Below the pieces are notes generated by a model, which was not told the origin of the DNA, ran no database searches, and saw only the letters and a list, made by a program, of their open reading frames with translations. This document shows positions 25,818 to 61,886 of a stretch of 64,000 nucleotides of DNA, in pieces; position 1 is the stretch's first letter; each line of letters begins with the position of its first letter. The stretch is taken from positions 2,914,001-2,978,000 of the forward strand of contig JBLDXI010000020.1 in assembly GCA_047495785.1 (NCBI GenBank). The letters run 5' to 3'. Made by a program: the position numbers and the translations under genes. The DNA comes from Lepidodermella squamata. Lineage: Eukaryota > Animalia > Gastrotricha.

Positions 25818-27429
25818 ATTATAGGCGACTGTCAATTTTGATGAAAACGCAGCAGTTTCTCCTGCTTTTTCCTCATGGTGCACGAAAGATATGATCATGA
25901 AAGTATTGAATGGTGCAATCACTGTGAATATTTTAGGAACTACGATGGAAGACATTCATGGCCCAAAATACAAGGAAATTATTTTCCTTGTACGGGGATG
26001 GCTCTTGAAGAAATTCACGATTACGCGATGTCAAAAATGGAGGCTATTGGATTCTTTGAAATTTTTTTGTTCCAATACATATTTCTGGTACAATACGACA
26101 GAGCACTCGCGTTAGGATTGATACTGAATGAGACCGAGCGATTGTTAGCTGCTCGAAACATGACCTTGGCTGATTGGACAACAAGAACCTCGAATTTCAA
26201 GCGCAATAGCCAGGATATTATTGGAATAATGAAAGAAGCCATATACAATCTACGAAATGTCTCAGGCATGAAAGGTCAGTACTCATTTGATGCCGCAACT
26301 GCACAATCTTCGGGATCTGTGCCAATTGTTTTTCAAGAGATAATCGTTGTCAGAAACGAAACTACACGAAAATATAAATCAATGCAATCAACAATAGCCT
26401 ATTATAAGAGAGCAACGACCCGTATCCGCTCACTATTCTTTGGTCAAAGAAGCGATGGAAAACGCCGAATAATTTGCCCCCGAGAGATGCTCTCGAGATT
26501 TCTCAGCAGATTGTGCCTGTTTGGAGTAATGCTGTCAAATTAGCGTTAGGGTTACTTGTATCCATAGAAATTGTCACTCTGATTGTTGCCGCAAATCTAG
26601 CTGTCAGGAGAGCCCGGGTTCTATAAAATAGAGCCTCGGTGATGATGCTTACTCTGGGCCAGGTTACCTTTCTTTGTCATAATAACATATCGGCTATTGA
26701 AACCAAGGACAAAGTTGAAATAGGCAGGTTATGCCTGGTTTCAGTTGTTCTGGTTTGGGCCGGGTTTTCTTTAATTGTGACTTCTATTGCTCAATTAACG
26801 ATCGGATTCGCAAAAAGAATGTCGTCATTCCTGGTAATAAGTTTTGGATGGGTCAGTATTCAGGCTATTCTGATAACTGCGGGGGCGAATTCTACAGCTT
26901 TTGACGTGAAGGAGAAAATGCTGGCATTTGAGATCTCGCCAGAGGATGCTAGCTACGGTATTCAACCTTTTCGCCTGGAATGCCAGATCCTCGAAAGACT
27001 TCTGTTTGGCTCGGCCAATTCTTTGGTGCTAACGAGCTCTGCTTGGTATATTGCAACTTCTGCTGCTCACGAAACTTTCAACTTCTGTCATATATATCAG
27101 CCACTTTGCACGGGAGGCACTTGCGAAACGCCCGCTTCAAGATGAGATAGCTATCACTTTACGCCGCAATTTTGCTGCTTGGAGCAGCTTTCTTCATAGG
27201 ATCATTGAGGCCTAATGACTACCAGTACTTGGCACTGCTGATCTCATCCATCTCGTTACTGATCGGAGGTGGTTTGATTGATTTGCTGTTCTTTGAAGGT
27301 AAAATGACACCATAGCTATAAAACGTTCTTTGATAGTGCAATTTTTCAGCTATGATCATTGAAAGGCGAGATATTCAGTCCCGCAAAACTCGAACGACAA
27401 CGAGTACAATCACATTGCGGAACCACTAA
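25818..27429 (+). pseudogene. Class C GPCR pseudogene, R3 (5'-truncated)
   Basis: Homology starts mid-exon 2 (ATVNFDENA). Frameshifts at ~25980, ~26410 and ~27045; in-frame stops at 26624 and 27148. Last exon resembles R2. Confidence 0.85.
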
Positions 27430-34816: not shown

Positions 34817-37377
34817 ATGTTGGTTGAATCGCTTGTAATAGTCAATATTCTCTTATTAAGTGTCGCCGTCGGAGATGATCAAGGCCCCATGAAAAAGTGG
34901 AGCCTCCGAGACCCAGTCCCAGATTTCGTATCAACCACGACCTACGACTCAACTAAAAATGGATCCAATATTGAGAAACGACCCACTATTACTTTGTCCT
35001 TCCTCGCTGAGTATCGCAGTCCGATTTTTCAAATTGGCCCGATTGGTTACCTAGCAGCGTCATTTGCGTTGAAGCGGCTTAAAACGTTGGATAACTGGCT
35101 GCCAAATTATGATATTCAGCTGGAAATGCGAGACACAGGCGTAATTTTGATTCAATTTTGCAATCTATGCAAACTATCCATTCCTTTCCCTTTTCACAGT
35201 GTTTGGACGCATCAGCTGTGGCTCAGTTCGTCAATAGCTTGGAACAGAGTTTCAACGGCATAACCGATCGATTTCCACTTGTTGGAATCAATGATTGTGG
35301 AATGGATGCCACACGCCTGTCTGCTCTTATGATCAAGAATTACAACATGATAGGTATTACTCTGCTACAGCAGCATATGGACTTACTTTTCAATCGTAAA
35401 ATGTATCCTAATTTCTTTCCTCTTGGGGAGAGGGGTGACATTATTTGCATAGCTCTTGCGAAGTTTATCAGAAAAATGGGCTGGAAACGAGTTTCGTTGC
35501 TCTCGGATACAAATTCCTACAGCTCAATGCTCGAACAAGGCTACGTCAAATGGTTCGAACAATTCGAAATCTCTCTTGTATACTTGGTTCGCTTCAGAGC
35601 TTACACTACTGACGAGTATGAACTTGGGTCCAGTTTCACTGAGCTTGCATTGAGAAAACCAAGAATTATCATTACGCAGAGTGGCAACACGGCAACATTT
35701 GCGTGTTATCTCCATAAATTCGGCTTGATTGGGACTAGTTATGTTACTATTATGGCTACAAATATGTTTGATGTGAATGCAGAGGTTTCTCCTGTTCTCT
35801 CTTCATGGTGTTCGAAGGAAATGATAATGGAAGTATTGAATGGTGCAATCTCTGCACAGCAGTATGGCTCCACAATGGCTGACATTTACGGTCCTAATAC
35901 TAAGGAGATGACGGGCGCAAGTATTGGCGACATGGTTGATTACGCGAATTCAAAAGTGGAAGACGCAAATTTCTTTTCCATGTTCTTAATGCAATACGAC
36001 AGAGTTCTCGCCGTTGGGTTAATTTTAAATGAGACCGAGCGATTGCTAGCAAGTCGTAACATGACCTTAAGTGATTGGACCACAAGATCTGAAAACTTCA
36101 AGCGGAATGGCCGGGATATTGTTGGAATCATGAAAGAAGCTATCTACAGCATTCATAATATCTCAGGCATGAAAGGTCAGTACTCATTCGATGCCACAAC
36201 TGCACAATCTGTTGGATCCATGCCGATACTATTTGAGGAAATTCATGTAACTAAAAATAGTAATACAGGAAAATATATATCAATGCGGTCGACATTAGCC
36301 TATTATAAAAGCAACGACCCAGAGCCTCTAACAGTTCGGTGGTCGAATATGCGATGGAAAACGCCGAATAATTTGCCGCCGAGAGATGCTCTCGAGATCA
36401 CCCACCAGCTTTTGCCTGATTTGAGTAATGCTGTCAAAATAGCATTGCGAGTTCTTGTATCCATCGAAATTATCGCTCTGTTCGGCTCTTTAGTGTTATC
36501 CGCCAAAAATGCTCGGGGTCTGCTGAATAGAGGGACGTTGTTGACATTGGCTTTCGGCCAACTGACTGTTCTATGCCATATTTACGTTTCGACCATCGAA
36601 ACCAAAGACAAAGGTGAGCTTGGTAAGATGTGTCTGGCAGCAGTTGTTCTTGTTTGGGCGGGGTTTTCGTTGATAACGGTATCAATGTCTCAATTGATCT
36701 GCAGATTCGCCAACAGTCTTCAGTCTTTTTTGCTCTTCAGTTTCGGCTGGGCATGTCTTCAAGCTATTCTGATAACCCTGAGTGCGAATGCGACAGCGTT
36801 TGACATAAAGGAGAAGATTCTTCCTCTTGAGATATCGCCAGAGGATGCGAGCTACGGTATTCAACCTTATCGCTATGAATGCCAGATTCTCGAGCAGTTG
36901 TTGGCAGGGTCGATGACCTCGTTCGTTGCTAGCATTTTCGCCGGCACATCGCAACTCGCTCTCCTGATCAAAACATCAGCCACTGTAATTTCAGCAAATT
37001 TGCACGGTAGAACTTTGCGAAGCCCCCGCCTGAAATTCAGATCGCTTGTGCTATACGCAGCGATGTTGCTGTTGGGAGCAGCTTTCTTTATAGGATCCTT
37101 GAGGCCCAATGACTATCAGTACCTGGCTCTGTTGACCGCATTCCTCACATTATTGATCGGAAGTGGATTGATTGCCTTTCTCTTCTTTGAAGGTAAAAGC
37201 ACACCTTGTGAAATATTAAGATTTCATTTCAATTTTGTAGCTTTTGTGGGAGAGGTGCCGGAAATTTATTCACGGAAATCACGAGCACCGAAACTGAGCC
37301 ACGCGCCAATCAGCCCTGCGCCGCCAGCTACTGGAAACTCGTTTTACAGGAACCAAAATAGCCCGAAGCCCGAATGA
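34817..37377 (+). CDS. GABA-B-like class C GPCR, R5
   Basis: Intact. Carries a 6-aa deletion (MQYDR versus QYIFPVQYDR). Its second intron is in frame and stop-free. Confidence 0.88.
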
Positions 37378-39838: not shown

Positions 39839-41250
39839 ATGGCGTCAACGCTAATACGAGAACTGCTTCTCATTTACTTCCTTGCAACTCTCGGGCATGG
39901 CTTCATTCGACTCAGGTTGACGAGAGTTCTAACAGGCCAGGCCCTAATGAATCGGATTCATTCCGATTCGTTGGAGCACGACCTTCGACGATTATTTGGC
40001 AAGAATATTGACCAGCAGAGCAACATGCCCATCCGCTACTACAACGTTAGAGATTTTCGGATCATATTGCTCTATATTCTAAATATATTCTATATTCATA
40101 TCATCATCTAAACAGAAGCAGTATTACGCTGAAATCTCGATTGGAACTCCTCCTCAAAAGTTCAAAATTTCCTTTGACACGGGCTCGGCTTGTTTGTGAG
40201 TTGAAACCTTGTGAAGCGAATTTTACGTAATTTATGTGAGTAAAGCATTGTCCCCTCGATCAAATGTATCAGCGATCGCTGCCTAAATTACACCCGTTAT
40301 GACAGTGCGGCATCCTCAACCTACATCGCAGACGGAAAGCAGGTGGTCGTTGGTTACGGCCCGGTAGAGGGCAACGTCGCTTTTCAAGGCTACGTAAGCA
40401 TCGACGACGTGCAATTCGGGGACATCGCCCTAAAAACAGCTAGATTTATTGAGTTCACAAAAATCCTCGAATTCCCCGATGACTTTGTGACCCCGTATGA
40501 CGGACTATTTGGCATGAACACAGTTAAGAACGATTCGGAGAATTGGGGACCTGGTTTGACAACATTCCCCGCAATGATGCAGCAAAATCTATTGGATGAG
40601 CCTATCGCGACTTTTTACATGAAACGTGAGCCGAATTCCTTAGATGGCGGGGAGGTGATTTTGGGTGGCAGTGACCCAAGCCTCTATGATGGAGAGCTAA
40701 CGACCCTGAAAACGGTCCCTCATCCTGCAGGATGGTGGGTCGTTCAAATGGATGGTGTAACTCTGGGGGATCAGAATTTCTGTCCTTCAGGCTGTAATGT
40801 CGCGGTAGATACCGGGATGCCGAAAATTGCTGGATCTCCAGCTAATATCCAGAAGCTTCACGCTGCTATTGGAGCTCGTGTTATCCGACCAGGAGGGCAT
40901 GAATACGTTATTCCCTGTGAGAAGTAAGATTCATTTTTATTGGGGTATCGTTGCTAATTTTCCAGTTTTCCAGGATACCATCTTTGCCGGACATTACATT
41001 CACATTTTCTAGCCGTCCATTCATTTTAAAGCCGCAGGACTACATCATAAAAACTGACAGCGATGGAGACTTCGCAGCGAGTCTTTGTGTCACAGTATTC
41101 GCGCCGTACCCATCCATTCCGAGACAGGCTGGGTTTGATTGGGTTTTGGGCGACGCTTTCATGGCACGAGTTGTTACTCAGTTTAATTTCGCTAATTTAA
41201 CCATTTCTTTTGGCCAGCAAATGAATAATGCTTTTATTGGCATCGCGTGA
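39839..41250 (+). CDS. A1 aspartic protease (AP3), close paralog of AP2
   Basis: [23 protein letters not shown]; VAVDTGMP; WVLGDAF; 4 exons. Confidence 0.92.
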
Positions 41251-42650: not shown

Positions 42651-45537
42651 ATGCCAATCTTTCAACATAACAGCAGAGTTCATTCGGAGGGTGTTGATGA
42701 TATTCAGAATGACACTTTATCAAAGTGCTGCCAGAGTGCATTGTCTCTCATAGACGCCAATCCAAAGACCAAACTTGGTAGGTCGCTTCAGCTCTCGCAG
42801 GTTTGTTCAACGAAGAGCATCAAGCGAACATGAATTATTTGCCCCTTCAAATCCAGATATGCATACTCTTGGCAATCGCCATAGCGGCAACTTGCGTGCA
42901 AATTTATACCGACGTCGAACTTTCCCAATCTAGGAATCGTAAATCGGCAAAGATTATCGTAAGTTTCAAATTCTCGGGTTTCTCTCGATCGTGATTTGTA
43001 ACGACTTTTTCAGAGTGTCATGGAGGAAGTTTTCGAAATTTACGACGTCATCAATCTCTTGTCATGTAAGCTATTTTGTATAGGATTCCTATCTTAACTA
43101 TAAACGTCTTATCATTTGTAAAAGCTGAAATGGAACCATCTTACGAGTAAGCAAACTCTCAGTTTCGTAAAAGAATAATAGTTTCACGGCTTTTTCTCTT
43201 CCTAAGGCACGTTAACGCACCGTATGACGTATTCTTGATGAAGGCCCAAAGCGCGATGCAGGAAGTGGACAAAGTAATATTTCAGTTGCAACCTCATTAC
43301 TAAACTTGTGATAATTCAATCTCTTCAACAGAAGTTGGTTTGGGCGACTAATTGGCCGACAGACGTTTCTGCACTGCCAAGCGCTCAAAGAGTGAATGTT
43401 ACATCGGCGTTCACTCTCCGAGCTGCAATCAGAGCAGTTCGAGACAGGAGAAAAATTTCCAACTCTACGACTGAAGCTGACGTTATATCATTCTATTCCG
43501 GAATAATCGACGCGCTGGCTATATTAGCCCGTACAAGCACTTTGAACTCGTTCAGGTTTCCGTTGTGGCAGGAATTTTTCACGGTTTATTACGCCTATCA
43601 AGTGGTTTGTAAATTTTGAAAATCGAATTCTAACATTATTGCCCTTCTTTCTCATCAGCGATTTAATTTTGGTAAATACTCAATGGTTGGCCAGAAGCTA
43701 GCAACTGAGAGTAAGTCTCAATCCGGTCTTACGATAAGGCTAAAAGATATCTTCCACAGATCGCACTGTCAACTTCAAAGATCCTATATATCAATCCTTG
43801 ATTCTATTCTACAATCGCTACCAAGAATTCATTAAGGTTTGCAGTGTAACCTCGGCATCTGGAAATGAGAAGGCGAAAAATTTGACAGAGCAGGAAGCTA
43901 ATCGTAATGTCGAAAGGATGCATCAATTCGTAAACCGTTCCTACCTCATTAAAATCAACGGATCATACTTAATATCAGACTTTTAAAAGGTTTTGGATCG
44001 TGATTTTGTCTCCTTGGACGGCGACGAATGGCGAAATGTGATGGGAGCTCAGGCTGCTAACATTCGGTGGGTTACACACTGGCTGACGCAGCGTATCCGT
44101 AGCAGTGTGGAGGAGTCGGTATATCTTTGGCCTTACGCCGACAAGCTGTGTAAGTGCTGATAAAGCTGAGTTTCATTATACTTCGAGCTTTCGGTTACTT
44201 TCAGCTGTTGGCTTGTTCGCCTCTTCTGCAGTTCTAATTTTACTGTGCGCTATTGCCCACTTAGTTGGGGCTTCAAAATTACAGCGGCAGATATCGGAAT
44301 CCCATTCCAACCTGAATTTGCTGTATGAATCCATGAATCTCATCTACGACTACGTGCCCAAGTCGCAAAGAGAATCAGTTAAACGCGGTATGACGGAGGC
44401 ATCAGTAGTTCGTTTTGCTCCAGGTTTGTGTTGATGCTCTGAAGCTTCTGATGTCCCTAACTCACGCCCTTTTCCCAGACACCTGTGTTATGGTCCTCGA
44501 CATCGTAAACGTCTCCAACCTGATGGAATCTCTCGACCTGGATGCATTTGAAACACTCATTCATGAATACTTCCAAACAGTTAATCTGGAATCCGAAGGA
44601 TATCATGACGACTAATAATGTCTTTCCTTTAGATCGAAACGACCCTGTTGAAGTACAACTGCTTCAAAGTAAATATTATCCAAGTCATAGCGTATATAAA
44701 TATGATATCTATTTTGCTAGGTTATGATAGCTGGTAAGTCTTGAAGAAACAGGCACGAATGATGAAAATCGTATATAATCCTACGCAAAATTGCTTAGGG
44801 GATACTTTATGCCTAGCTGCTGGCGTTGGAGAACACCATGCGACGGTAAAAAATCCTGAAAAAATTTAATATTTTTGATCGCTACTAATTCTTTCGCAGG
44901 ATCATATCTGGGAGGTATTCAGATTTGTACAACACCACTCTAGGTAGCCATAAATCCCTATATGTATAATTAGATGCTGTCACTAGCACTCGAGCTGGAG
45001 GAAACTTTGTCACAACGGGCGGAGGTATTAGATGAGAAATCAATAAATCTCCGAGTTGGACTACATTCAGGTTTTCCATAAATTAAAAAATCAGCAAAAA
45101 AGTTCACTCTTACTATCAAATTAGGTCCCAGTTTCTACCGGATTTTCCAGAGCTTTCGCTTCCCCCAAGTTGGCATTTTTGGACCCATTATGCAAATGGC
45201 CGCTCTGATGCACGCAACCGGCCTCGGTGAGACATTATTTTATTTGTATTATTTTCATCCATGCGATGCTTCCAGGGCGCAAGATTCATGTATCCTCTTC
45301 GATTTTCAATCGATTGAGTGGAACAGATGAATTTATGTTTCACGCGCGCGGAATCACTTCCTTATCCGTAAGTCCTATTTCATGCTTCCCCCATTTCTAA
45401 GCCAGATTAAACTAATTTTTTAAAAGGATGACGAAGCTCGAATCCCGTCTTATTGGGCGACTTGGAGCGACGAAACGGAAAATTACGACGAGACGTCTAG
45501 TGTCACCTCTGTCCTGCGAAGAGCGAAACGCGACTAG
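42651..45537 (+). CDS. NIT-type receptor guanylyl-cyclase-like protein GC1 (TM - extracellular helical domain - TM - class III cyclase domain), about 20 exons
   Basis: ANPKTKLGRSLQ then TM1; WP..DVISFYSGIIDAL; TM2; LIYDYVPK; DTCVMVLDIVN; YNCFK|VMIAG|DT; LRVGLHSG; FPQVGIFG; KIHVS; SYW. Confidence 0.8.
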
Positions 45538-46269: not shown

Positions 46270-49200
46270 ATGCCGCTTTTTGGAAAATTATTCACCACAA
46301 ACAAACCGAAGTCCAAGGTCGAGAGCCATTTATTCACAGTCGCCAACTATTACATCATCTGCGCAACTCGTTTCGCCTTTACTACAACGAAAAAGATAGA
46401 GACTATGGCGACTCAGTTACAGCAGCAGCGGTTGCCTCCGAAGCATTTGGTTGAGCAACTTAGAGATACTGGAGAAAAGTCGCCGAATTCAGCGGTCACA
46501 ACTTTCCCTGCAACTGGCGGACGGTTAAAACCCGAGATAAAACTCGACTTGAGAATGCCGACCTTTCAAGGTTCAAAGGGAAAATCCGGTGCAGCGAAGA
46601 GAGACCCTATTGGCCGGTTTTTCAAGAAATGTTTTGATTTTGTCGAAGCTAATCCACGAAGCAAGAGAGGTCGAGCAACCCAGCTTTGTCAGGTTAGTTA
46701 ATTTTTGGGATATTTCTCTTTTTATAATCATGGAATGACGTTAGGTTTTCACGTTTGTGTTTATTGCGTGTGCCGGAATCTTCGTCCAAGTTTACACCGA
46801 TTGGGAGCTCGCTGTAGCTCGAGTCGACAGAGCGAAACGCGTCAATGTTAGTTTGAAGAAGACTTCGAAACTCCTCCCTTACATTGTCTGTATTTCAGGC
46901 TTTGAGTAATACGATTTTCGAACTGTATGACGTCATAAATTTGTTGCTATGTAAGTTCATACTAAGACTTGATTCCAGAGTAAATACAAATACATGAATT
47001 CTTTTTTCAGTGGAAATGGAACCATTCTATCAGTAAGAACAGAAGACAGTAAATTTTTGAAATCGTCTATTTCACTTTTTAGACATAATGCGGGGCCTTA
47101 CGATGACTTCCAAATGAACACTCAGAGTGCAATGAAAAACCTAGATACGGTGAGTCGGGTAAGATATTGAAAAAGGGATTCATTTTCCGTATTTTTCAGA
47201 AATTGCTCTATATATCGAGATGGCCCAGCGACCTATCCTCACTTCCGTCTGACAAACGGAAGAACGTGACAGATCCTATTGCTGTAAGAACCGCTGTGAG
47301 AGCTATGCGAGAAACTAGGAAATCTCCAAATGGAACAGCAGGTAATTCCCTCATGAAAACAGTATCGAAAATTAGTTCTTAATTTCCAGAGGCTGAAATC
47401 ATTTCCTTTTACTCGTCAATGGTTGACAGCCTGGCTCAGCTTGCCTTGTCAGAGACCATGCGATCCGACAGATTCCCGCAATGGGACGAATTCTTTTCAA
47501 TTTATTACGCCTTTCAAATGGTAATTTATGTCTCTTCACCTGATAACAAAATTTCATTATGATTAATGCAGCATGTCAACTTCCGAAAATTCACATTGGT
47601 CTTACATAAACTAACCGAAGAAAGTAAGTCGAAGTTGCTGGATGTTTGAAAGTTTCAAATTGTCCTCATTTTTAATTTTTAGACAGAACTATGGAATTCG
47701 AAAATCCGGTGTATCAATCTCTTCTGGGATTCTATGAGCGATACCTAGAATTTTCTAAGATATCCCTCGTTACAAGCATTGCCTCTATGGAGAAAACCAA
47801 CAATCTCACTGATCAGGACACCGCTCGTCAAGTCGACAGAATTCATAAAGAAGTACACATTATTGGCCGTTTTATAGGTTGCGATACAAGAGATATACTT
47901 CAATTAGAATTTAAGACGCAATCAGATTAGAATGTCATTCCGATTAAATTTACATCCTTTTTTCTTTTTTTCCATTATAGATTCTCAATCGGAATTTCGA
48001 TGCGCCAGGTAAAGAGGAATGGCACACAGTCACGTCAGCCCATGACGCCAATATAGTTTGGATAACGTCTTTTCTTCGAGTCCGAATTATCACCAGCATG
48101 GACGAAACTATCGGCCAATTTAAGTCGAACGAAATATTTTGTATGAAACTGGAGCCTATAGCCATATAAAAGTGCTAACATGTTGACGTTATGTTTCAGC
48201 TGTCGTATTACTAGCGATATCATCGATTTTAATTGCCATATCTGCTGCTCTGCATGTGATTAACACTTGGCGATTACAGGACCACATAATCGAGTGTCAT
48301 TCAAACTTGGAAACTTTGGAAGGGGTTTGCTCCGTTTTTGCTCTTGTTTTCGCTTCATATTTCTACTGCTCATTCTTCAGTCACTGAGTCTACTTTACGA
48401 CTACATTCCCAAAGCATTCGTTGGCCTGGTCAAGACAGGCAGGACTTTTCCAATCCGCCACTTCCCTGGTAAGTTGGCGCGTGGTTCATCGAAGGAACAT
48501 GGATGATATACTTTGTGTTAACAGATACTTGCATTATGGTAATCGACATTTCCAACATTTTCTCGTTTATCGATGACATGGAACACAGCGATCAATTTTG
48601 CCTACTGCTTGAAGATTTCTACATTACGGTTGGTTGGCTACTTATTAAGTCTATTGAAGGTATCCATCCCTTACACTTATAGCTCGAAGAGATTTTGGTG
48701 AAGTACAATTGCTTTAAGGTAAGGAGTGGTCCTAAGTAAAATTGTAAAACTAACCCGTGCCTTTCCTCAAAATAGATCAGCCTAACCGGTGATACAATAT
48801 GTCTGGCGTCGGGTGTTGGAGAACATCATGTCATGGTAACAAACGTTAACTACGATTAACTAATATATCATGGCTAATTTTTGCTTTGAACCAGGATCAC
48901 GTGGCGGAGGTAAAGACCTGTCATTCCAAATATATTGGGAATTTTAAGCGGTTGCGTCTTTAGATGTTGCACCTCGCTCTTGAACTAATTGATGCGAGCA
49001 AGGAGAAGGAGGATGTCGATGAAAAGCTACACCTACGCATAGGCATTCATGAGGGTATGCTTTTGAAGTCGATTTATCATAAAGCCATGAAATGAATGTT
49101 TCAAGGCCGATGCTACTCAAAAGTAATGACATCAACATACGTTCCCCAAGTTGGGATTTTCGGAAACCTGGTGAAAACTGCTTCGATAGTACATGCCGCA

Positions 49201-49696: not shown

Positions 49697-50977
49697 ATGA
49701 TCACATCCATCGCTAGCATTCATAACAACAGCGCGGTTAATGTGGATTTCGAGGTTCGGCAGTTTTATTTGTGTGAATTATGCGGCAAGGAAACGCGAAC
49801 AGTTGGCGGTTTGAGAAGCCACCGCAATTTCATTCATGGAATCGTAGACGACCGAGCAGATTTGGAGCCATCCAAGGTCGTTCAGCTTGTGGTAAGATCT
49901 TAGTTCCCAGTTGCTTTTCAAGTTCTATTCTTCTTCCAGCCTTTGACCCCGCTGGAAACAGATGTAGCTTCAGCTTTTTCAAGCCCATCAGCAGTAACAA
50001 ACGAATCCCAGACCACCTATGGAACAGCTGATGATGCCTTACCTTCCGAAAATTCACCAACTCCTCAGATCGCCGATCCTTCACCTCGCATGCCTGAGCC
50101 AGAGATCTCGGCATCCCATACCTCGTCAAAGCTAGTTGAATTTTTGAATGCCAAAATTGCTAGTATGATTCGCAAAGTTTCTGGAAAACTTCAGATATAC
50201 GCAAAAGCCTTCTACAGCGTAAGCAAGGTAACTCAAATTGTTCAACTAAAATTCACATACAGGTCGGTCTCTATTTTGAAGGATGACCCGCTAGCCTCGA
50301 TATATCAATCAATTTTCCTTCTTGAGAAATCTGGCGATAAAGAGCTGATCATTTTCGCCCTGTTCGCCGAAAAGCAGCGAACGAAACCTGGCCGGGTATT
50401 TCTTTCTCACTATGGCGCTCCGAATTTCGTGAAACGGCTCAGTGACAAACACTCGACGTTTTACTCTGAGTTGTTCGCCCGTCTTGTTCTGGCCTACCTC
50501 AAATATCTGCAGCTAACTGGGCAGTACGATCATCTCTACGTTTCAACTCATCCGTTACTCAACGAGCCAACTGAGGGCAGTAAAGCTACAATCACTGGTG
50601 GATTGTTCGACTCCAATGACCCACTCAAGTTGTCGCCAGCTTGGCTACAGTCGATATTCAACGACGCGAAGCGGGTGATGATTTTTCACCCTGGTTGCGT
50701 AACCTTATTTTCCAAGCCTTATTACGTTTCTCAATTCTACATTAATGGTCAGCAAGGTGAGAGCGAAGAATCACCGGAGATGAATGCGCCTATCCATCTT
50801 TGTCGGCCAAAGTGTTTCGTTCAGTTCCGTGAAAGTCTTCAGCTCTCCTTCGAAACGGCAAAACAAGCATGCGTGGCAACCAAATTGATTTTCGACCCTG
50901 CTTCAGTGGCGTGGGCTAATAGCTTGTATCGGAAAAGAAAAATAAATGTAACTTCGGACTCATCTCGAAATGAATAA
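49697..50977 (+). CDS. C2H2 zinc finger + divergent p300/CBP (KAT11) HAT-like domain (ZK-A), 3 exons
   Basis: CELCGKETRTVGGLRSHRNFIH; SKLVEFLNAKI; SIFLLEKSGDKELIIFALFAE; RVFLSHY; LVLAYLKYL; AWL; LSFET..ATKLIF; C-terminal RKRK. Confidence 0.75.
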
Positions 50978-52104
50978 AGCTTATTTATTGGTTGAAATGA
51001 CTTTTAATGAGACTTGCAAAGGTGTTGCAATCAGTTGCAATTATATGAAGGGTTTCGTGTGCAGGGATTTGTGTGCAGCAGATGGAGAAAGCTCGATGAA
51101 AAATCAGTCAAATTACAATCGAAACCTATTTCGGCATTGTTTTATGCCGGACTTTTAGCCTTGTTTAGGAAATAAAACATAATTTGGGATTTTACACATT
51201 ATAGCTGTCAAGTCACTTTCGGGTCAGAAATTCACACATTTTCATATCGTTAACAGAAATACTTTGCCAGTTCAGAGATTATTGGCATATTAAAAATGTA
51301 TTCAATAAAACATTGTGGTGGCTCTCAGTCAGGTGTTTGCATTTTTTGCTAAATTCTCTATGATTGACCTGAACCAGACTCTGACCCCTAACTCTCTGTC
51401 CGTGGTAGGCCCCCAGTCCGAGTTGAATCGTAAAAAACAACACGTGATGTCCACACTTTTGGATCGATTAAGCAAGAATGCTCCGGATTGGACAACTTTC
51501 AAATCAGTTAAAGTGCACTTTTTTGACTTGCCACAAGTAACTTACCGAATGGAGTGACGAGTGACTGAAGAGTCCATGCCTCATGAGTTGAGGTAATGTT
51601 TCGTAACACAAAACAAGTCTGGCAAGTTTTGGTGATCAGATGATGTGTGCACTGGCCGTTAAAAAAATTTTAATGCCTAACGCCTTCACTCTTTCATCCC
51701 AATTCCTAAAATAGGATCCATGGCATCAATCTTAGAGGCAACTTGGGCTGAAATTGGCCAGTAATTTGCTATAAGATTTAGCATGGAGCATGGCTGCCCT
51801 ATAAAAACTCTGACATTTATTTTCTCCAAATTATTTGTCACAGATTCTGCCACGTATTTGAATCGCGTGCCGCCGGCTTCAGATGACGCGTGCTAGCGTG
51901 ACAAATAAATTTACGCTACGAACATGTGGAAGACTACAATCATGGTATTCAATAACAAATAAACATCGATCACAAACAAGGATTATTTTTAACTGCTATA
52001 TTATCACTTCATAGCCTTTATAGTTTTCATCATTTTCGCTTTTATTATTATTATTATTATCCTATCATTATTATTGTTATTGCGATAGGTTTATTCGTGT
52101 AAAA

Positions 52105-53412
52105 ATGATCAGTCTGCCGGCAGACAGTGCCTTGGAAGATGATTGGGACGTCATGAATGGCGACCTGATCCGACCACTGAATAAATGCGAGATCTGTGAC
52201 CGAGAGACAAGAACTGCCACGGGTTTGGTTCGCCATCGGCAATACGTTCATGGTATTGTCGATGAAAAGCCTCCTTCCCCAGTCAAGCCTTCAAAGACCA
52301 TTCAATTTGTGGTAAGTCTACTTTGTTTTCAGACGTCATCATTCATTTTCATCTTTTGTAGTATAAACCGACTCTGGCCACCTCGCAAGACATCGCACAG
52401 AGCAAGCAGGCCAAGAATGTCAATCAAGAAATCAGGCCAACTGCAAAAATTCAGCCTATTCCCGTTGATATTATTGGTAACAACAGCAGCATTGAGCCAA
52501 TTGATGATATTGTCCAAAGCCCCGCTATTCCTGCCTCGCCTGTCAAACGGCCTAAAGTCCTCAGCATCGTTCCTGTCAATGTTCCTGTTACTATACCAAA
52601 ATTCGGTATTCAAGAATTCATTAATCAAAAGATCGTTGGCGTAGTTCAAAAAGTGTCTACATCTCTTCAAATACATGCTAAAGTGATTTCGAGCTTCAGC
52701 AAGGCAAGTTTCGATGAAATTCCATTTCTTTTTGTTGAAATTCTGTGTGATGCTTCAGGATTCTATTTCGCGATCCATCTTCCTGTTGGAAAGATCCGGG
52801 GATCAAGAGCTGATAATTTTCCTCATCTTCACGGAGGAGCATAAAAATGACCCAAGCCGTGTGATTCTGTCACGATTTGGCGCTCCGAGCTTCGTCAAGG
52901 CGCTGAGCGAGAGCCATCAGGGCTTTTACTCCGAGCTGTTCGCGACTACGGTTCTGGCCTATCTCGATTTCGCCCACTCTTCATCAGCCTATGAACACCT
53001 CTACGTTTCGACCGAGTCTCTATTGAGTGAAGATGACGCGCAAACGCCGAGAAGAGACATTTTCAACTCTGTCGATCCGCTGAAATTTTCAGTCGCTTGG
53101 CTGCAATCGATTTTCATCGATGCTAAACGTTTCTCTATCATTCATCCGTCTAGTGATTTACTATTCGCTGGGCCGTTCTATGTTTCGCAGTTTATGAAAG
53201 CCGATAGCAAAAAGTCGAAGCCAAAAGTGTTTACGGAGGCTACTCATGAACGATTTCCTCGACACCTTACCGAACCACGGCGGTTCTCTGACTTTTGCCG
53301 CCGATTTCAGTTACGATTCGAAACAGTTGCAGAAGCCAGCCAATCTACCAAACAGATTTTCGAAAGCAAATCATCGGTAGAAAGCCGGAAGAGGAAAATT
53401 GCGGCGCATTGA
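52105..53412 (+). CDS. C2H2 zinc finger + divergent KAT11-like domain (ZK-B), 3 exons including a GC-AG intron
   Basis: CEICDRETRTATGLVRHRQYVH; IQEFINQKI; SIFLLERSGDQELIIFLIFTEE; RVILSRF; VLAYLDFA; LRFET..SQSTKQIF; RKRK. Confidence 0.75.
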
Positions 53413-53639
53413 GTTGTTTTTTTTTCGTTGATAAATTCTTGAAATAAAATCTTTTTTTTTCGTTCTCATCGGCTTTTGAAAATAACTCTCTCCATAACGG
53501 ACTAAGCATCACGGACTAGAATGAAGCCAATAAAAAATGCTTGAACTTCCTGTAAGATTTCCGAAACATATTGGAAACATACTGGAACTCTTCGTTCAAT
53601 CATTTCTAGTATGCAGAAGCAAATGGATGCAAATGGCTC

Positions 53640-53970
53640 TAAGAATTAGCTGGGACGCAATAAGAGTAAACGACATGAGGGCAAACGAGCTAAGAGCAGA
53701 ACGTCATAGAGCAATTTCCGATGATAAGCCAACGACAAAAAATGACACACGCGATTTCGTCCACGATTTGGTGTTTCGTCCGAGTTTTCAAGTGAAAGGG
53801 GAGCCAGTTTAACAGTAATTTAGGCTGCTTAATCGGTCTAAATTCGCTTGACAACTTTCAGAAAAAACCAAGTCGCGTGTCATTTTTTTCCTTGATTCAT
53901 CATCCAAAATTGCTCCTATATGCTCTTTGCTCGTTTTCTCCTAAATCGCTTGTCGCTTGTCCTTAATTCA
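53640..53970. mobile_element. Degenerate palindromic MITE
   Basis: Inverted blocks AAACGAGC.AAGAGCA..GAGCAATTT / AAATTGCTC..TGCTCTTTGCTCGTTT and AAAAAATGACAC..GCGA / TCGCGTGTCATTTTTT. Confidence 0.5.
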
Positions 53971-54426
53971 TATAATCATAAAAGTGTGCTGAAATGATTG
54001 TCATTGGTCATAGCACCATGCAAATCCCATTGTTATCGAATGGAGATGAATGATTGCACCTTTTTGGAGGAAATTATTTCACGGATAGCAGACCTCACTA
54101 TACTTCTGTAAGTACGTTTGTGCTAGTCCCACGTCCATCATTGGCGCTTGCACTGACCGCGCAAGTAGGACATGCCCCAGATTTCACAGATGACCATTTC
54201 TCTCTGGATTCAGAATCTAGCAATTAATTTTCTTCTTATTCCCGCAGTACATTAGTACTTTTCCCGATTTATTAAGAAAGAAGAAAAAGCATTATCCTAT
54301 CAATTTAGCTCCTGCACTGGTCATTATAATCCGGGGTAATAATGCAATCAGCCGCACGCGGCTTAGGTCATCTTCAGGGCTTTTTTAGCAGTTTCTTACC
54401 TTGCTTATTCGACATCAATTTCGCAA

Positions 54427-57400
54427 ATGTTTCTCGCTCAAAAACTCTCAAGGCCCTCAGAAAATATCTCAGCTTACATGAAGCATATCGCCCGGCCTTT
54501 TTACGAGCTGATGGACGACGAGGAAGTCGTTCGAGTGGCAGCAGTTGACCGAAGATCATCAGTTACAATAGTCGCCGATTCATTGCATAACGGCTGCTTG
54601 AAGTTTGGCGAATGTCTGCGGGCAAACCCGCAAACCAAAATCGGGAAATTTACCCAGTATTTCCAAGTTACTGTGTTCTCAGCAATTCTGATCACAGCTA
54701 TCTTCGTTCAAATCATACCGGAGATTGAACAAAGTACAGCTCGCAGTGCACGAACAACGCGTTTGATCAGGTTGAACAAAATGGTGTTCGAGCTTTACGA
54801 CGTCATTAATGTTTTACTCGGTTCGACCCACCATTAAACATCACTTGATCAGTATAAATTGCATTCCCTTAGATGAGATGGAGCCTTCTTACATGTACAA
54901 TCAAGGGCCCTACGATATCTTCCAGCAGAATACCCAAAAGCTAATGCAAGCTGTGGATATGGTATGTTTTGAGCCCCTCTTTTCGTTGAATATTTCATTG
55001 GGACCTCTTTCCTTTCCTTGAAAGAAACTCATTTACGTCGATAATTGGCCGACTGATCTGTCAGCTCTACCTGTAGCAAGCCGCGTTAACGTCTCATCAA
55101 TTCTCGTCCTGAGAGCTTCTATGAGATACATTCGCGAATCGAGAAAGGTTGATTTGTAATCCATTCCTTTTTCATCACACTCATGACATCTACGTTTTAG
55201 GCCGAAAATGGGACGGATGGTGATTTTCCATATTAAATGATATTCCGTTTTTGATTGATAATTCATGCACCAGAGGCTGAAGTCATCAGGTTTTACTCAT
55301 CAATTGTTGACAGCCTTGCTATACTTGTGCGAACGAGCACAATCAACTCTGACAGATTTCCGGGTTGGGGAGAGTTCTTCTCCATTTTCTACACATTTCA
55401 AACAGTAAATTCTCGGGTTGACTCATGATTCCCAAGCTTAATCTATTATACAGCTTATCAACTTTCGAAAGTATGCCATCATCACAACGAAGCTAATTGC
55501 TGAAAGTAAGGGAATAGTCGCGATTAAGAGAAGTTATTAAATAATATTTTATCAATAGATCGAACAGTCACACTCAAAGACCCAGTCTATCGATCCATAA
55601 TAGATTTCTATAGCCGTTTCAATGCTTTCACCACATTGATAGCCATTCCGTCTGATGCTGGCGCGGCAAAAGTTGCAAATCTGACTGATCAGGAAGCAGC
55701 TACTCAGCTCGAGAAACTCTACAGATATGTATGCTTCAGTTGCCTATTTTCTTAGGGTAGTGGCTAAACAACATATCTATGGAATTCCAGGTTGCCATTC
55801 AAGATTTCAGTACGCCCTTCGTAGACGACTGGGTTGCTGTCATGAACGCCCATCAAACACATATTAGCGATATCATCACATCTATGTCTGCAGTTACTCG
55901 CAAAGCTTTGGAATATAACTCTACAGCGTGGAGTGACCGAGATTTGTTGTGTAAGATGCATTCCAAGAAGTAGGCTTCATATTAGTTCATCAATTCTTAA
56001 TCTCAAGCATTGGCACTGTTCATCGCCGCTGTTGTTACGGCTGTCTTAGCCATAGTTCTACATTATGTCGCTACAGCACGATTGCAAGCCCAGATCCTTT
56101 ATTCCTACGGGAACTTGCATATGCTTAACGAGGTATGCATCTTATGGGACGTATCTTCTGATTACAAGGTCTTTTTAGGCCATGAATTTGGTCTACGAAG
56201 GTGTGCCGCCGTCTTTTGTCAAATCCGTGAAAGCCGGTCACAAGTCTAACCAGCCTTATCACTTTTCAGGTATTTTTGCATCAATCTGTGCTGTGGGCCC
56301 CCAACTTGTTATCTGTAACTCGTTGTTCACCATAACATTTTAAACCGAAGATACCTGCGTTCTAATGTTGGATATGTCCAATATGAGCAATTTGTACGCG
56401 TCACTTGAACCATCCGAGCTGCTCGATGTTTTAACATCTTACTTCTCCTTTGTAAGTACTTATCTCAATTATCCTCCGACCGAATGCAGTTGCCATTGTT
56501 CTCTAGATTGAAGAACACATCAACAGATACAATTGCTTCAAAGTATGTTTTATTTACGATTTTACTTGTAACAGGAAACTTAAAAACTTTTGTCAGATCG
56601 ATGTGCACGGTCTGTTAAAGCATAAGTACATTTCGACCAGCTATCATTTTCGGCTTCAATTTAGGAGATTCGTTTTGCATAGCGTCCGGCGTCGGAGAAC
56701 GACATATGATTGTGAGGCTAAACATCATCTGTCTAAAAGATTATTACATTTTTCCTCATTAGGACCATGTTGCTGAGGTATCTGTGGAATAATTTCCCAT
56801 TTTTTCTAATAACCAGTCGTTCCTCTTTGAAGATGTTGTTCCTAGCCCTTGAGCTGATGGAAAATCTTTCTGGGATGAAAATTGACGAGTACGACGTATT
56901 CATTTTTCTGCGGATGGCTCTTCACTGCGGTTGGTTCAATATTAACTCACCATTTGATTCACGCTTTGCCTTTCTTATTTGAAATCACAGGACCCTGTAT
57001 GGCAAACTTGTTCACTCATCTACGCCTGCCTCAGATGGGCATTTTCGGACCACTAATGCCAACTGTTGCTCTCGTGCACTCAGTTGCTTTACGTAAGCAA
57101 GAAGTATCATCTAGGCTCGCCTTTTCTTGGGCTATCCAACGACACCCCACTCATCGGGTTTTACCTAAGTGACCCAACCACTCAAAGTCTCATAGGAAAG
57201 GGAACTTTGAACTTCTACCTCTAGGCTTGGATTTCAGATACATATTACAGTCCTATTTCTACACAACTTGAAATTCGATTTACGCCAAAATTTCTGAGTC
57301 TTTAGGAAACTTACCTATTACGTCGAGCCTATCCATAACCGGCTCTTCAAGTTTGAAATCCTCAGATCGGAGAGTTCAACTTGTTGGTACGAAAATGTGA

Positions 57401-57728
57401 TTCAGATGACGATCGTTGATGGTGAAAATCGATTCCCCACCATATGAACTTCCAGAGAATGCATTTGTAAAGAATTCAATCTTATTGTATTCCTTTCAGC
57501 CAATCAAGTTCTGGTGACATCCGTTGTAGCAGAACGGCTTTGGGAGGTGGACGAATTTCTATTCCGCGAGAGAGGCCCACTTCGGGATAATGTGAATACT
57601 TAAATTATCTTTTTAAACTTCTTACCTTCTTTTTCATTCAATAGAAATTGGGGATAATTTCAACTTACGTTGCACAATGGGACAAAGGTGAGCCGGGTGA
57701 CGAAGACCAGAGCGTGATCGACTCTTAA
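54427..57728 (+). CDS. NIT-type receptor guanylyl-cyclase-like protein GC3
   Basis: ANPQTKIGK, TM1, EVIRFYSSIVDSL, TM2, DTCVLMLDMSN, FK|IDVHG|DS, LRMALHCG, LPQMGIFG, FRERG, STY. The start codon is uncertain. Confidence 0.8.
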
Positions 57729-57987
57729 GCCTATTGACAATCTTGAAAAACGGCATATTCCTTGAAGAAATATATTCCTTGTAGCACTATTGTCCCAATA
57801 AATTATAATCCGAAAAAGCAACAATCCGCCTTAACAAAGTCACGTTTATTCTATCAATCGAAAATTGAAACTTCAATAAGGTAGAAGAAACACAGTTAGT
57901 TTGAAACTCGGCTTTTGTGCGATTTTTGCAACAATAAAAATGACGAGGCGAAAAAAAATTGAAGAAAAATCAAACAAAAAATGATCA

Positions 57988-60900
57988 TCAGAAAGTGGAT
58001 ACGCAAGCTTCGGAGGCCAGCAGGCTCAAATGGCGTAAGATGTGGGACGTCGATCGCGAGGCACTCGTCAACGAATCGAATCGCCAGTCGTTATTGCGGC
58101 ACTTTTCCTTGAATTTAGCCGCGCAGGACAGGTAGACCGGGGTTGGAATAATCGCCGAGATCGCGGCTTCAGACAAACTCGCCGCGGAATTGCTGCTATT
58201 ACCCCCGCCGATTTTCGGCATCAATCTCACGAGGAAAAATCGATAATGGGACATGAGGTCGAACAAAATCGAATCTCGCATCGATCGATTTTGCGTTGAT
58301 TTTTCGCTTTCAAACAACTGCCGGGGCGTTTTAGCCATGCGTTCGATAACAGCCGCCTCAAAACGATGCGGCCAATCGTCGCCGCGGTCGATGAAAACCG
58401 GCGGTTTGAAGGTGTGGTCCTTCTGGAATCGGTCGACCAGCGACTCGAAGCCTTGAACAACGCCCTGTCGAACGGTTTCTTCCAACGTCTTCATCAGCCA
58501 ATCTTGGCTTAGTCGAACTCGGCTTGTCGAGACTAGATTCGATCCGTCGTAGAAAATCGGGTCTTCGGACATGTTCGCGCTATTTTCGTTGTTCATCGAA
58601 ATGTCCTGCGTTGTGATATAAATCTGTTGATAGCCGTCGTTTCTCAGACACGTGATGTAGGCGGAGATGAGGTGTTTGAACAAATCGTTGTGCCGTTCGT
58701 CTTCCAACTCGTGCACATCGCCGGGTGGGCCGAAATGCGTGATGAAGGCGCATTTCGCGGCTGGAACTTCTTGTGCGAACAGGGCGAATGTGATTGACTG
58801 GACCGAGGTGTCGTTGCCGGCTGGGAGGCTTTCGAATAAAAATAGAGTGCGAGACGTGGACTCGAAGCGGAACGAATGCGGCAGTTGGAACATCAGTTTT
58901 GAAAGGCGAGTGAGCTATAAATAAATAAGTAAACATTTAGTAAACGCAACCACCTTAAAATAGGTCATGACCTCTTAAATAAATGCAATAAATGCAATAA
59001 GTGTTCGCTGTATCTATCTGTCGTAATCTTCCTTTGTGACCTAGTTTCTTCCTTCTGAAACTAGGTCACTAGCAATATTATAGGCGAGTTAGCTACGTTC
59101 GAGCTTTCAGAGATTTTTATGATAAAATTAAAAAAATCGTACCTCGAAAATATTTTTGATATTTGAAACTTGGCGGACGTAGATTTTCGCCGGTACATTA
59201 GCGGGTTTTGACGGCGCTGCTGCAGCATCAGTGGTAGTATCGGCTTCCATAACGTTGTCCGCATTGTTCTCCGTATTATCGGCCATTTTCTCGCGCAGAT
59301 AGCTCAATAGTTCTTCCTCAATTCGTAGGCTATAAGCCGAGTGAGGAATCGCTAAAAATTGAAGAAAAAATGATTTTAGATTTTTTGATTTTGTTAATTT
59401 AAGATTTTTAGAAATTTTATAAAATTTGAAAAAATTTTACTTAAAAAATAATAATTTTCGAATAAAGAAAAATCAGTAAAAATGATGAAAAAAATCGATT
59501 ATACCTTCGACGCTTCCTGCTGGCATTAATTTTTCAATGGGAATATCACTGAAAGCCGTCGTAGGCCGACTCATCAACTCGCTGCCATTCCCATCGTAGA
59601 CGTAATCATTCAACTCATCGCCATCAACTTTCGCCGAATTGTACAAGTGAACAAGGGTCCGATGGCGGGTAACGCCACCCTTCGTCGTGAAAAACACGCC
59701 GCATTCGTTGCACCGAGTCGTAACCGTTTCGCCCGAGAAGGTCTTCGCCGAATCACCGTTAGCTGTAGCGCCATGTTCCGTGGCTTGGTGAGAAATGAGA
59801 TCGCCGAGATTATGGAATTTTCGCTTTTTCTCGTTCGGGCACAGCGAGCATTTGAAACTGGTTTGATTGCCGGTCGAGCCGAAGTAGTGTTCACCTTCAG
59901 AATCACTTGAGCTTCCGAAATCTGGCTCTCGTGGTGCCGCATGAGATCTGCCCTATTTCAAAAAAGAATTAAATTTTTAATAAATTCGGAAAAATCGAAT
60001 AAATAAAATTCTCAATTTAAAAAATTAAAAAAAATCAGTGAAATTCAAAATTAAATTTTATTCAAATTTTTAGAGATCAATTACAATTTTGAAAATTAAT
60101 TTAAAAATTATTTTCCTCGGAAATCATTTTAAATATTTGAAATTTGAAGCACAAAAAAGTTGGTTTTGCAACTCACCTTATGAACAGCCAGGCCCATTTT
60201 AGTTCCGTATACCGCGCCGCATTCTTCGCACTTGAACATGACACTGGTCACTTCTTCATTCTCATTATTAGCCGCCTGTTGTTGGGCCGGTACTTTGATA
60301 CTTCTCCTCGGCAATTTCGCTTGCCCGTCGCCATTCGCCGCTGAATTTCCATTGCTATGGCTATTCGCATTATTCCCACCGCCGCCACCGTGAATTTTGC
60401 CGCGGTGAACTGCGAGACCCATAAATGTGGAGAAAATCACGTGACACTGCTCGCATTGCTGGTCGTTGTCGATGAATCTCTGCGCCGATCCTTCCCGCTG
60501 TCCGGCGCAGTCACGCGTCATTTGGTGCTGATGCAAGTCGGCCAGAGTTCGGAAGTAAAGCTTCAGCGGTCGGCATAGCGAGCATTCGTAACTCGTTGAA
60601 ATCGGCTCTTTGATGCTTTCTTTACTCGGCGCCTGTTGCGAGGGCGTGGAAATTTCGGCTTTTTCGACTTTGGCCTCGACGGGTTGGACAACGGGACGAG
60701 TAGCTGAACTAGCCGAGTTGTTGACTTGGCTGACGGATAGGCGGGATCGTTTGAGAACGGGCGCGCGATCTGGCGAGGAGATAGATCCATCTGACCCAGA
60801 TTCGGACACTTCTTCGTCGCTTATTTCACCTTCACAGCTCTCGGCTTCATCTTTTACCTACAAATTGGTATAAGTATTAGGAAAAGATTAAAATTAAGAT

Positions 60901-61886
60901 TAGGATTAGGATTAGGTGCTGCTGGAAATTATTCCGCGAAAAAATGTCTAAAAAAAATAAACCCGCGAAAATTAATGGACTGGGGAGGAAATCGAAAATC
61001 AAATGATTCATCACAATTCTACAAGATGAAATACCGAAAATTACCGAACCAGTTATCATCGGGGTTTCCCGAGTTTTCACCGGTAAATTTTTCATTTTCA
61101 TTTTTTTTGGTTTTATACCGCTGATTAAAGATCAAGTTTTCTCTATATGTTTAATTTTTTTAATTATTTGAATTTTCTACAAAAAATTGCCAGATTAAAA
61201 AGTAGTTGCCTGACTTCTGGGACACGCTGTAATAATTTCTAGATTTTTCTCAAAATTATCCATAAAAAACTAGTATGCGGATTTATCCTAAATTTAGAGA
61301 AAAAACTACAATTTTCTAAAAAAAACGAGGCCATGTGTGAGTAGTAGACCATCATTCAGAAAATTCAAACATTAATTTTCTAATCACCAAAATTTAAAAA
61401 TCACAGCAGCCTAATTTTATAGGTCAAAATGCCATATCCTTTATTTTACACCAGATTATTTGCCACGAGATGGGGTATTTTCCCGCGATTGAAAAATTGC
61501 AAGGCCCAAGGTTCAAATTAAAAGTGAAATCATGGCAAATTATTTTAATATTTTGGAAAAATCGAAATTTTACCAACCTTATTGCTTGATTCGTCATCGG
61601 CAGTTTTGACTTTTTTCCGCCGCTTCGTCGCATTGGCCTGCTGCGTCGCCGCCTGCGTATGATCGACCCCATTTAAATTGTACTGAGCCTGCGTGCCATT
61701 ATGACTACGCCCTGTGTGGCACCAAAACGCCGGCATGCTAGCCAATAACAGGCCACACTGGTTACACTTGACAAATTTAGCCACCGAAGTCGAGCCGATG
61801 ATTTGCGGGCACTCGTCGCGCTGATGCTGCAGCACATCGGGCAGGTCGTGGCCGATTTTTCGGCACAACGAACAGCAAAGCGGCAT
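57988..61886 (-). CDS. Seven-zinc-finger + divergent p300/CBP (KAT11) HAT-like protein (ZK-C), 5 exons
   Basis: Exons ~61886-61578, 60857-60177, 59952-59505, 59351-59142 and ~58914-57988 splice in frame; HK|GRSH completes a finger across an intron. The C-terminal part aligns in order with p300 HAT motifs. Confidence 0.8.

Follow-up and report, generated by a model that had tools for sequence, protein, structure and literature searches.

The 64,000-nucleotide (nt) stretch of the gastrotrich Lepidodermella squamata considered here (contig JBLDXI010000020.1, positions 2,914,001 to 2,978,000; hereafter the window, meaning this whole stretch) contains three predicted genes that encode one or more C2H2-type zinc fingers followed by a shared domain resembling the histone acetyltransferase (HAT) domain of p300 and CBP. 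The window is eukaryotic DNA of ~41% GC, and its long open reading frames (ORFs) are broken by short AT-rich introns. An initial sequence-only reading had named three start codons (49697+, 52105+ and 61886-) as those of genes with fingers and a common domain. Gene assembly from these ATGs gave an in-frame gene in all three cases (Table 1), with a domain of 250-380 amino acids (aa). No further copies of the three proteins were detected in the window by tblastn.

The introns of genes 1-3 are 48-720 nt long, with a GC content of 14-38%, and conform to the GT-AG rule except for one GC-AG candidate in gene 2. Their donors read GTAAG, GTGAG, GTACG, GTATA or GTTGG and their acceptors (T)nAG, and an AATAAA motif is located at or past the stop codon of each gene. 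Segment 52704-52758 of gene 2 matches gene 1 coding sequence, but with deletions of 8, 1 and 2 nt; judging from its sequence, gene 2 either splices out this segment as a GC-AG intron or is frameshifted. Directly before it, over 52614-52703, gene 2 exon 2 is 53% identical to gene 1 (tblastn). The earlier view that the reading frames are intact holds for genes 1 and 3, and for gene 2 only if the segment is spliced in this way. Gene 3 and the gene for a metagenomic relative termed P0002 (see below) share the position of an intron that follows the first β-strand of the domain, and the GC-AG candidate of gene 2 falls there too. At this conserved position, exon 2 of gene 1 carries an in-frame, stop-free stretch of 54 nt (50228-50281, + strand) that begins with GTAACT and ends with AG. 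The stretch encodes a conserved block, IVQLKF, and is probably coding, although it may be an intron that is alternatively spliced or retained. A shorter, 35-nt intron at 50228-50262 was rejected because it breaks the frame.

The fingers of the three genes differ in number and spacing. Genes 1 and 2 each encode a single C-x2-C-x12-H-x4-H motif; gene 3 encodes seven finger motifs, in which a CSLC...HQ...(C/H) type alternates with a C-(E/N)-x-C...T..GL..H-x4-H type. Against the Pfam zf-C2H2 profile (cut-off 25.2 bits), gene 3 exon 2 passes with 25.8 bits and gene 3 exon 3 scores 25.0 bits, with genes 1 and 2 under the cut-off at 16.6 and 17.3 bits, respectively. One gene 3 finger (60230-59941) has its final two zinc-binding residues encoded in exon 3, across intron 2, and the exon 2/3 splice is independently supported because this finger is completed across the junction. 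The finger closest to the C-terminal domain is recognizably the same in all members of the family.

Sequence-specific DNA reading usually relies on a tandem Krüppel-type array with short linkers. No tandem array of this kind, with short conserved linkers, is formed by the single fingers of genes 1 and 2 or by the dispersed fingers of gene 3, which lie 14-130 aa apart, are of the H-x4-H or C2HC type and are devoid of TGEKP-like linkers. It is thus doubtful, from the arrangement of the fingers, that the family as a whole is "sequence-targeted", as had been proposed: the proposal finds no support in the single-finger genes and is weak for gene 3. Basic clusters in gene 3 (KRRKKVK) and at the C-termini of genes 1 and 2 (RKRK) suggest a nuclear location for the proteins.

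Table 1. Predicted genes, exons and candidate intron of the zinc-finger/HAT-like family in the window
Feature	Position	Strand	Exons	Content
Gene 1	49697-50977	+	49697-49891, 49940-50977	410 aa, one finger
Gene 1 exon 1	49697-49891	+		Single C2H2 finger at 49772-49837; followed by a 48-nt GT-AG intron
Gene 1 exon 2	49940-50977	+		Linker and short-form KAT11-like domain (~50108-50974); C-terminal RKRK; AATAAA overlaps the stop codon
Gene 2	52105-53412	+	52105-52311, 52362-52703, 52759-53412	400 aa, one finger
Gene 2 exon 1	52105-52311	+		Single C2H2 finger at 52186-52251
Gene 2 exon 2	52362-52703	+		Linker and N-terminal part of KAT11-like domain, from ~52587
Gene 2 candidate GC-AG intron	52704-52758	+		55 nt, AAG/GCAAGT...CTTCAG/G (slashes mark the splice junctions); removal restores the frame
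Gene 2 exon 3	52759-53412	+		Remainder of KAT11-like domain (short form); C-terminal RKRK
Gene 3	61886-57988	-	61886-61578, 60857-60177, 59952-59505, 59351-59143, 58914-57988	857 aa, seven finger motifs
Gene 3 exons 1-3	59505-61886	-		Seven finger motifs and KRRKKVK cluster; internal repeats seen
Gene 3 exon 4	59143-59351	-		N-terminal part of KAT11-like domain (YSLRIEEELLSYL..., KIYVRQV); aligns with the N-terminal helix and first strand of CBP and P0001
Gene 3 exon 5	57988-58914	-		Main part of long-form KAT11-like domain: SRTLFLFE, RGDDWP, FFLVRL, WRFDSLTSASRST

Relationship of the shared domain to the p300/CBP HAT

The C-terminal regions of the three proteins are clearly related to one another. 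Gene 1 matches gene 2 with an E value of 6e-55 (tblastn), and gene 3 matches gene 1 at 7e-09 and gene 2 at 1e-07 (BLASTP), with a second segment that joins the extreme C-termini of genes 3 and 2 (E 2e-04). Alignments made with HMMER and MAFFT to p300 and to a canonical CBP reproduce the order of p300 HAT motifs that the sequence-only reading had described. That reading had also listed the pairs EGDFWP/RGDDWP and FFVIRL/FFLVRL as shared features, which is correct for gene 3; in genes 1 and 2 both are absent. Relative to gene 3, P0001 (a second metagenomic relative) and p300, ~70 aa are missing from the interior of the domain in genes 1 and 2, a deletion that removes the EGDFWP helix, the autoinhibitory-loop region and possibly the FFVIRL strand; both genes keep the C-terminal motif.

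Individually, the window proteins approach p300 only distantly. The best match of gene 3 exon 5 in the PDB is p300, at a phmmer E value of 0.078; gene 1 has no match in the same type of search, and a profile made from the three window genes did not retrieve p300 from the PDB. The link is provided by the two relatives, which emerged when 1.84 billion cluster representatives were searched exhaustively (HMMER) with a profile of genes 3 and 1. This search returned exactly two matches: P0001 (360 aa, matched over nearly its full length, E 4.6e-18) and P0002 (270 aa, E 8e-8). P0001 scores 72.7 bits against gene 3 exon 5 (phmmer) and retains a p300-like FAMFVQEYG block; it passes Pfam HAT_KAT11 with 35.6 bits against a cut-off of 22.5 (8e-9) and matches p300/CBP chains in the PDB at E 3e-9. 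With a six-sequence family profile, the 22 best PDB matches are all p300/CBP, the best of them (9.8e-9) extending from the RTKALFAFEE strand through the final helices (positions 70-340 in a chain of 348 residues).

Profile-profile and structural comparisons lead to the same place. Alignment of the three window genes with a canonical CBP HAT by hhalign gives an E value of 3e-5 and a probability of 72.6%, which rises to 92.7% when P0002 is added and to 96.1% with P0001. The reference here, L005, is a CBP-type ORF of 1588 aa located on a contig from a metagenome. The gene 1 domain and gene 3 exon 5 were also modeled with AlphaFold2, at predicted local distance difference test (pLDDT) values of 62 and 60, and for both models the p300/CBP HAT is the only protein among the 50 best PDB matches listed by Foldseek (gene 1: E 9e-8, TMq ~0.43; gene 3: E 4e-7, TMq 0.26-0.32). 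These structural results are taken as corroboration only, because the models are modest and the underlying alignments held CBP fragments. The sequence-only reading had staked its proposal on a profile or structural match to KAT11, and such matches were obtained through P0001, the family profile and Foldseek. On the combined evidence of an intermediate member and of profile, profile-profile and predicted-fold comparisons, we regard the homology of the shared domain to the p300/CBP HAT domain as established.

P0001 and P0002 derive from ENA metagenome assemblies and are probably paralogs of one other organism, because both come from the same samples; alleles from the metagenomes differ from each other by just 0-3 nt. 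Upstream of each HAT-like ORF, across an intron of ~55-62 nt, is a finger exon, encoding two fingers for P0001 and one for P0002, and the finger pair of P0001 corresponds to the alternating pair of types seen in gene 3. The combination of fingers and HAT-like domain is therefore conserved, since both relatives carry C2H2 exons directly upstream. In the metagenomic organism (L002 219-7067, L003 285-5180 and L004 2348-2983), the P0002 gene is located directly downstream of a Tudor-domain gene cluster, for which the window has no equivalent.

The family is extremely rare in public protein collections, with 2 clusters among the 1.84 billion representatives. When gene 3 exon 5 or the family alignment was used to query word-indexed protein collections, there was no match at all or P0001 and P0002 were the only ones, and no window-encoded protein was returned in any protein search of public collections; the source genome appears to carry no annotation in the collections covered. 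A metagenome contig scan with gene 3 likewise gave nothing. The same type of scan with P0001 had L005 as its sole match, which proved to be a canonical, protist-type CBP and serves as a reference rather than as a family member. The L005 gene (981-5747, + strand; JGI metagenome) is a single ORF with canonical YLDS, WACPP and KKWY motifs, together with very long acidic/basic inserts and a Cys-rich insert within the HAT domain. A published family combining C2H2 fingers with a KAT11-like domain, or a natural pseudoenzyme of the p300 class, was not found in the literature, within incomplete coverage, in keeping with the initial impression that this architecture had not been described.

Active-site residues and constraint on the proteins

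For residue mapping, the spliced domains of five members (genes 1-3, P0001 and P0002) were aligned with the canonical CBP and numbered from the ungapped anchors YLDS...W1436 and W1466 of the p300 alignments. The L1 loop and R1462, where alignment is ambiguous, were left aside. The position of the catalytic tyrosine, Y1467, is occupied by L in genes 1-3 and P0001 (W-L) and by I in P0002 (W-I). W1436 is replaced across the five members by S, T, S, S and L. In the YLDS strand, which becomes (H/R/N)(F/Y)G(A/P) in all five, Y1397 is N, H, H, R and H, D1399 is invariably G and S1400 is A or P, and the adjacent V1401 is P throughout. R1410 is changed to H, H, Y, Y and Y, T1411 conservatively to S or N, and Y1414 to F in 5/5 members. 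Gene 3 exon 5, for example, reads HFGPP for YLDS, YITT for HIWA and DWL for EWY. The changes that had first been noted in the window copies (WY to WL, W1436 to T or S, and YLDS to (H/R)(F/Y)G(A/P)) are thus borne out by the residue table. Of the features of a catalytically competent p300/CBP, namely the catalytic tyrosine, W1436 with the YLDS strand, and the R1410/T1411 contacts to the phosphate of coenzyme A (CoA), none is intact in the five members.

Other parts of the domain have been retained. W1466 is invariant, S1396 stays S or T, I1395 stays aliphatic and the hydrophobic core is kept. Among 15 family-invariant columns, nine are identical in the canonical CBP, comprising core Phe and Leu residues, W1466 and the A..T of the C-terminal motif; the invariants peculiar to the family (G, P and F) are located in the former cofactor strand. 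There, a new invariant (F/Y)G(A/P)P motif stands in place of p300 pocket residues. In p300, the positions replaced in the family form part of the pockets for lysine and acetyl-CoA (PMC6770547), and mutation of the CREBBP equivalent of Y1467 (Y1503C/F) yields an inactive enzyme (PMC12305233).

Because synonymous divergence (dS) by the Nei-Gojobori method is saturated for gene pairs 1/2 and 1/3, the constraint on the proteins was assessed from four-fold degenerate sites. Within identical residues, four-fold degenerate third positions differ at 64% of sites between genes 1 and 2 and at 73-74% for pairs 1/3 and 2/3, where ~75% would be random. Protein identity is 44% between genes 1 and 2 and 25-28% for the pairs with gene 3. 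The finger and the domain stay alignable between the copies, but the linker does not. These sequence comparisons give a qualitative but clear indication that the proteins have been kept by selection after old duplications.

A putative non-catalytic KAT11 module on zinc-finger proteins

The features described above can be set against known systems. With p300/CBP (KAT3, Pfam PF08214), the family shares a homologous domain whose conserved blocks follow one another in the same order, beginning at the first helix and ending with a C-terminal HLEFSSLRRAQWST-like motif, as well as W1466, the hydrophobic core and a predicted fold for which only p300/CBP appears among the 50 best matches listed. It differs from p300/CBP in having C2H2 fingers instead of bromodomain, RING/PHD, ZZ, TAZ and KIX modules, in the replacement of Y1467, W1436, D1399, S1400 and R1410, in the absence of the EGDFWP helix region from genes 1 and 2, and in a similarity too low for a direct Pfam match. 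The other exons of genes 1-3 contain no bromodomain-RING-PHD or ZZ/TAZ modules, their Pfam matches being only of C2H2 type, and the 64-kb window contains no canonical CBP gene. Two-part proteins of the same layout exist as epigenome editors, in which an engineered zinc-finger or dCas9 module is joined directly to the p300 HAT core. Those fusions are artificial and active and use designed multi-finger arrays, unlike the family, with its degenerate active site and few or dispersed fingers. In lymphoma, "zombie" CREBBP mutants of the lysine acetyltransferase (KAT) domain, dead at the catalytic tyrosine, still occupy chromatin and block EP300 (bioRxiv 10.1101/2023.09.05.556242; PMC12333230). They offer a working model for a natural decoy, although they are somatic point mutants of full-length CREBBP, whereas the degenerate domain of the family is germline-encoded, ancient, duplicated and attached to fingers. 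A precedent for a pseudo-acetyltransferase domain is found in O-GlcNAcase, in which such a domain is kept without cofactor-binding features (PMC3814719); it differs in its GNAT rather than KAT11 fold and in its protein context.

Taken together, it seems probable, at roughly 0.68, that the family carries a selected, non-catalytic KAT11 module on a zinc-finger protein. Genes 1-3 would be paralogs of a small, lineage-restricted family in which one or more C2H2-type fingers precede a domain descended from the p300/CBP HAT. Such a family could have originated when the HAT-coding part of a cbp-like gene was joined to a finger unit, with later loss of the p300 catalytic apparatus and retention of the fold. 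Because the catalytic and acetyl-CoA-holding residues are replaced in every member, the domain would no longer acetylate by the p300 mechanism, and most likely serves instead as a binding or scaffold module on a probably nuclear protein. Conceivably, it occupies or recruits genuine CBP's partners at sites that the fingers determine, or binds another ligand; it might be a decoy for CBP clients, by analogy with the KAT-dead zombie CREBBP, a docking partner or a ligand binder. The lineage-specific pseudo-acetyltransferase family of the sequence-only reading is in agreement with the homology, the residue losses and the architecture, the "pseudo" part being read from the residues.

Several points weigh against this reading. 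The loss of activity is predicted from residues alone, and the invariant FGAP motif lies exactly at the p300 cofactor contact, where a ligand site could equally have been kept or changed. The co-splicing of finger and HAT-like exons, and their expression, are predicted from the gene models, and gene 2 may be a pseudogene. At saturated dS, a formal dN/dS is not computable. The AlphaFold inputs were shallow alignments that included CBP fragments, and the resulting pLDDT values are low to moderate (60-62). The ORFs of gene 1 exon 2 (which contains the whole domain), gene 2 and gene 3 exon 5 have no match to Pfam HAT_KAT11 at E <= 1. This last result, together with the failure of the three-sequence profile to find p300 and the marginal E value of gene 3 on its own, would fit a resemblance due to chance or composition, in which the shared domain is an unrelated, lineage-specific fold. 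That explanation is effectively refuted by the chain of significant matches through P0001, by the family profile that reaches p300 at 1e-8 over the whole domain, by the hhalign E value obtained with the window genes only and by fold searches that yield only p300/CBP among the 50 best matches listed.

The KAT11 fold can also catalyze with other residues, a further point against loss of activity: fungal Rtt109, a divergent KAT11-fold protein that lacks the p300 accessory domains and has different active-site residues, is enzymatically active, requires histone chaperones and has no zinc fingers. By sequence the family is clearly closer to p300/CBP than to Rtt109, no chain of which is matched by the family profile in the PDB at E <= 1. 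Still, the domain could be an acyltransferase with a re-wired active site, differing from p300 as Rtt109 does and delivered to its targets by the fingers. The retained fold and hydrophobic core would accord with this, as would the kept or conservatively replaced W1466, S1396, T1411 and Y1414, and the conservation of the FGAP motif at the cofactor strand keeps such an enzyme in consideration, since an invariant G-x-P there suggests constraint on the pocket. Genes 1 and 2, however, are without ~70 aa of the domain, and the acidic substrate-pocket residues of p300, which we take to be D1625 and D1628, are not kept in the family. All members carry substitutions at five independent pocket or catalytic residues, among them the tyrosine whose mutation inactivates CREBBP (PMC12305233; PMC6770547), and an active enzyme is accordingly judged unlikely. 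Less plausible again is a set of decaying, functionless relics of a partial cbp duplication. The internal deletion in genes 1 and 2 would suit such relics, as would the gene 2 deletions that break the frame relative to gene 1 unless the GC-AG intron is used; yet long ORFs are intact in genes 1 and 3 and in the two metagenomic relatives, AATAAA accompanies every stop codon, at or past it, proteins that are 25-44% identical conserve their core residues despite silent sites close to saturation, and the architecture of finger and domain is retained in a second organism.

p300/CBP is a central coactivator of animal transcription and, to our knowledge, its HAT is otherwise known only in the bromodomain-PHD-HAT-ZZ-TAZ context, or as Rtt109 in fungi. 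What is new in the family is the architecture and the degenerate active site; the fold and the finger type are already known. If the domain is indeed a non-catalytic module, the KAT11 fold would have a non-enzymatic use, zinc-finger proteins would gain a new type of effector domain, and a natural model for dominant-negative, non-catalytic CBP function would be at hand. A more far-reaching proposal, which we offer tentatively and consider rather less likely to be right than wrong, is that these are the first natural pseudoenzymes of the p300/CBP class: finger-tethered dead HATs that act as locus-restricted CBP antagonists or docking partners, as germline counterparts of zombie CREBBP, or else regulators that sense acyl-CoA through the FGAP pocket. 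The family is also useful as a bridge in sequence space, with the FAMFVQEYG block retained by P0001, and helps to detect very divergent KAT11 domains that are missed by Pfam.

Other genes in the window

The finger/HAT-like genes are interleaved with a three-copy gene family on the forward strand (~43308-44434, 47167-48506 and 55022-56249) that has no Pfam match and shows 36-64% identity between copies (tblastn). Because of this interleaving, the region may have grown by segmental duplication. Neither tRNA and Rfam matches nor telomere repeats were found in the 64-kb window.

Further upstream on the same strand is a tandem array of five nearly intron-less genes (15984-37377), with ORFs at 15984-18020, 21957-23930, 25875-27145, 30021-32048 and 35158-37377. 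In each, the ligand-binding region is of the ANF_receptor type and the C-terminal half is hydrophobic and multi-pass, an arrangement that resembles class-C G protein-coupled receptors. The third copy (25875-27145) is split into two ORFs and may be broken or intron-bearing.

Aspartic proteases of the cathepsin-D/pepsin type (Pfam Asp, E 1e-40) are represented by three large exons at 10872-11543, 12672-13259 and 40343-40927 (+), and their best relatives are only ~40% identical. Two paralogous ORFs at 6012-6581 and 8420-8893 (+) encode cysteine-rich proteins with signal-peptide-like N-termini, the first of which ends in a partial Kunitz/BPTI match of 22 bits.

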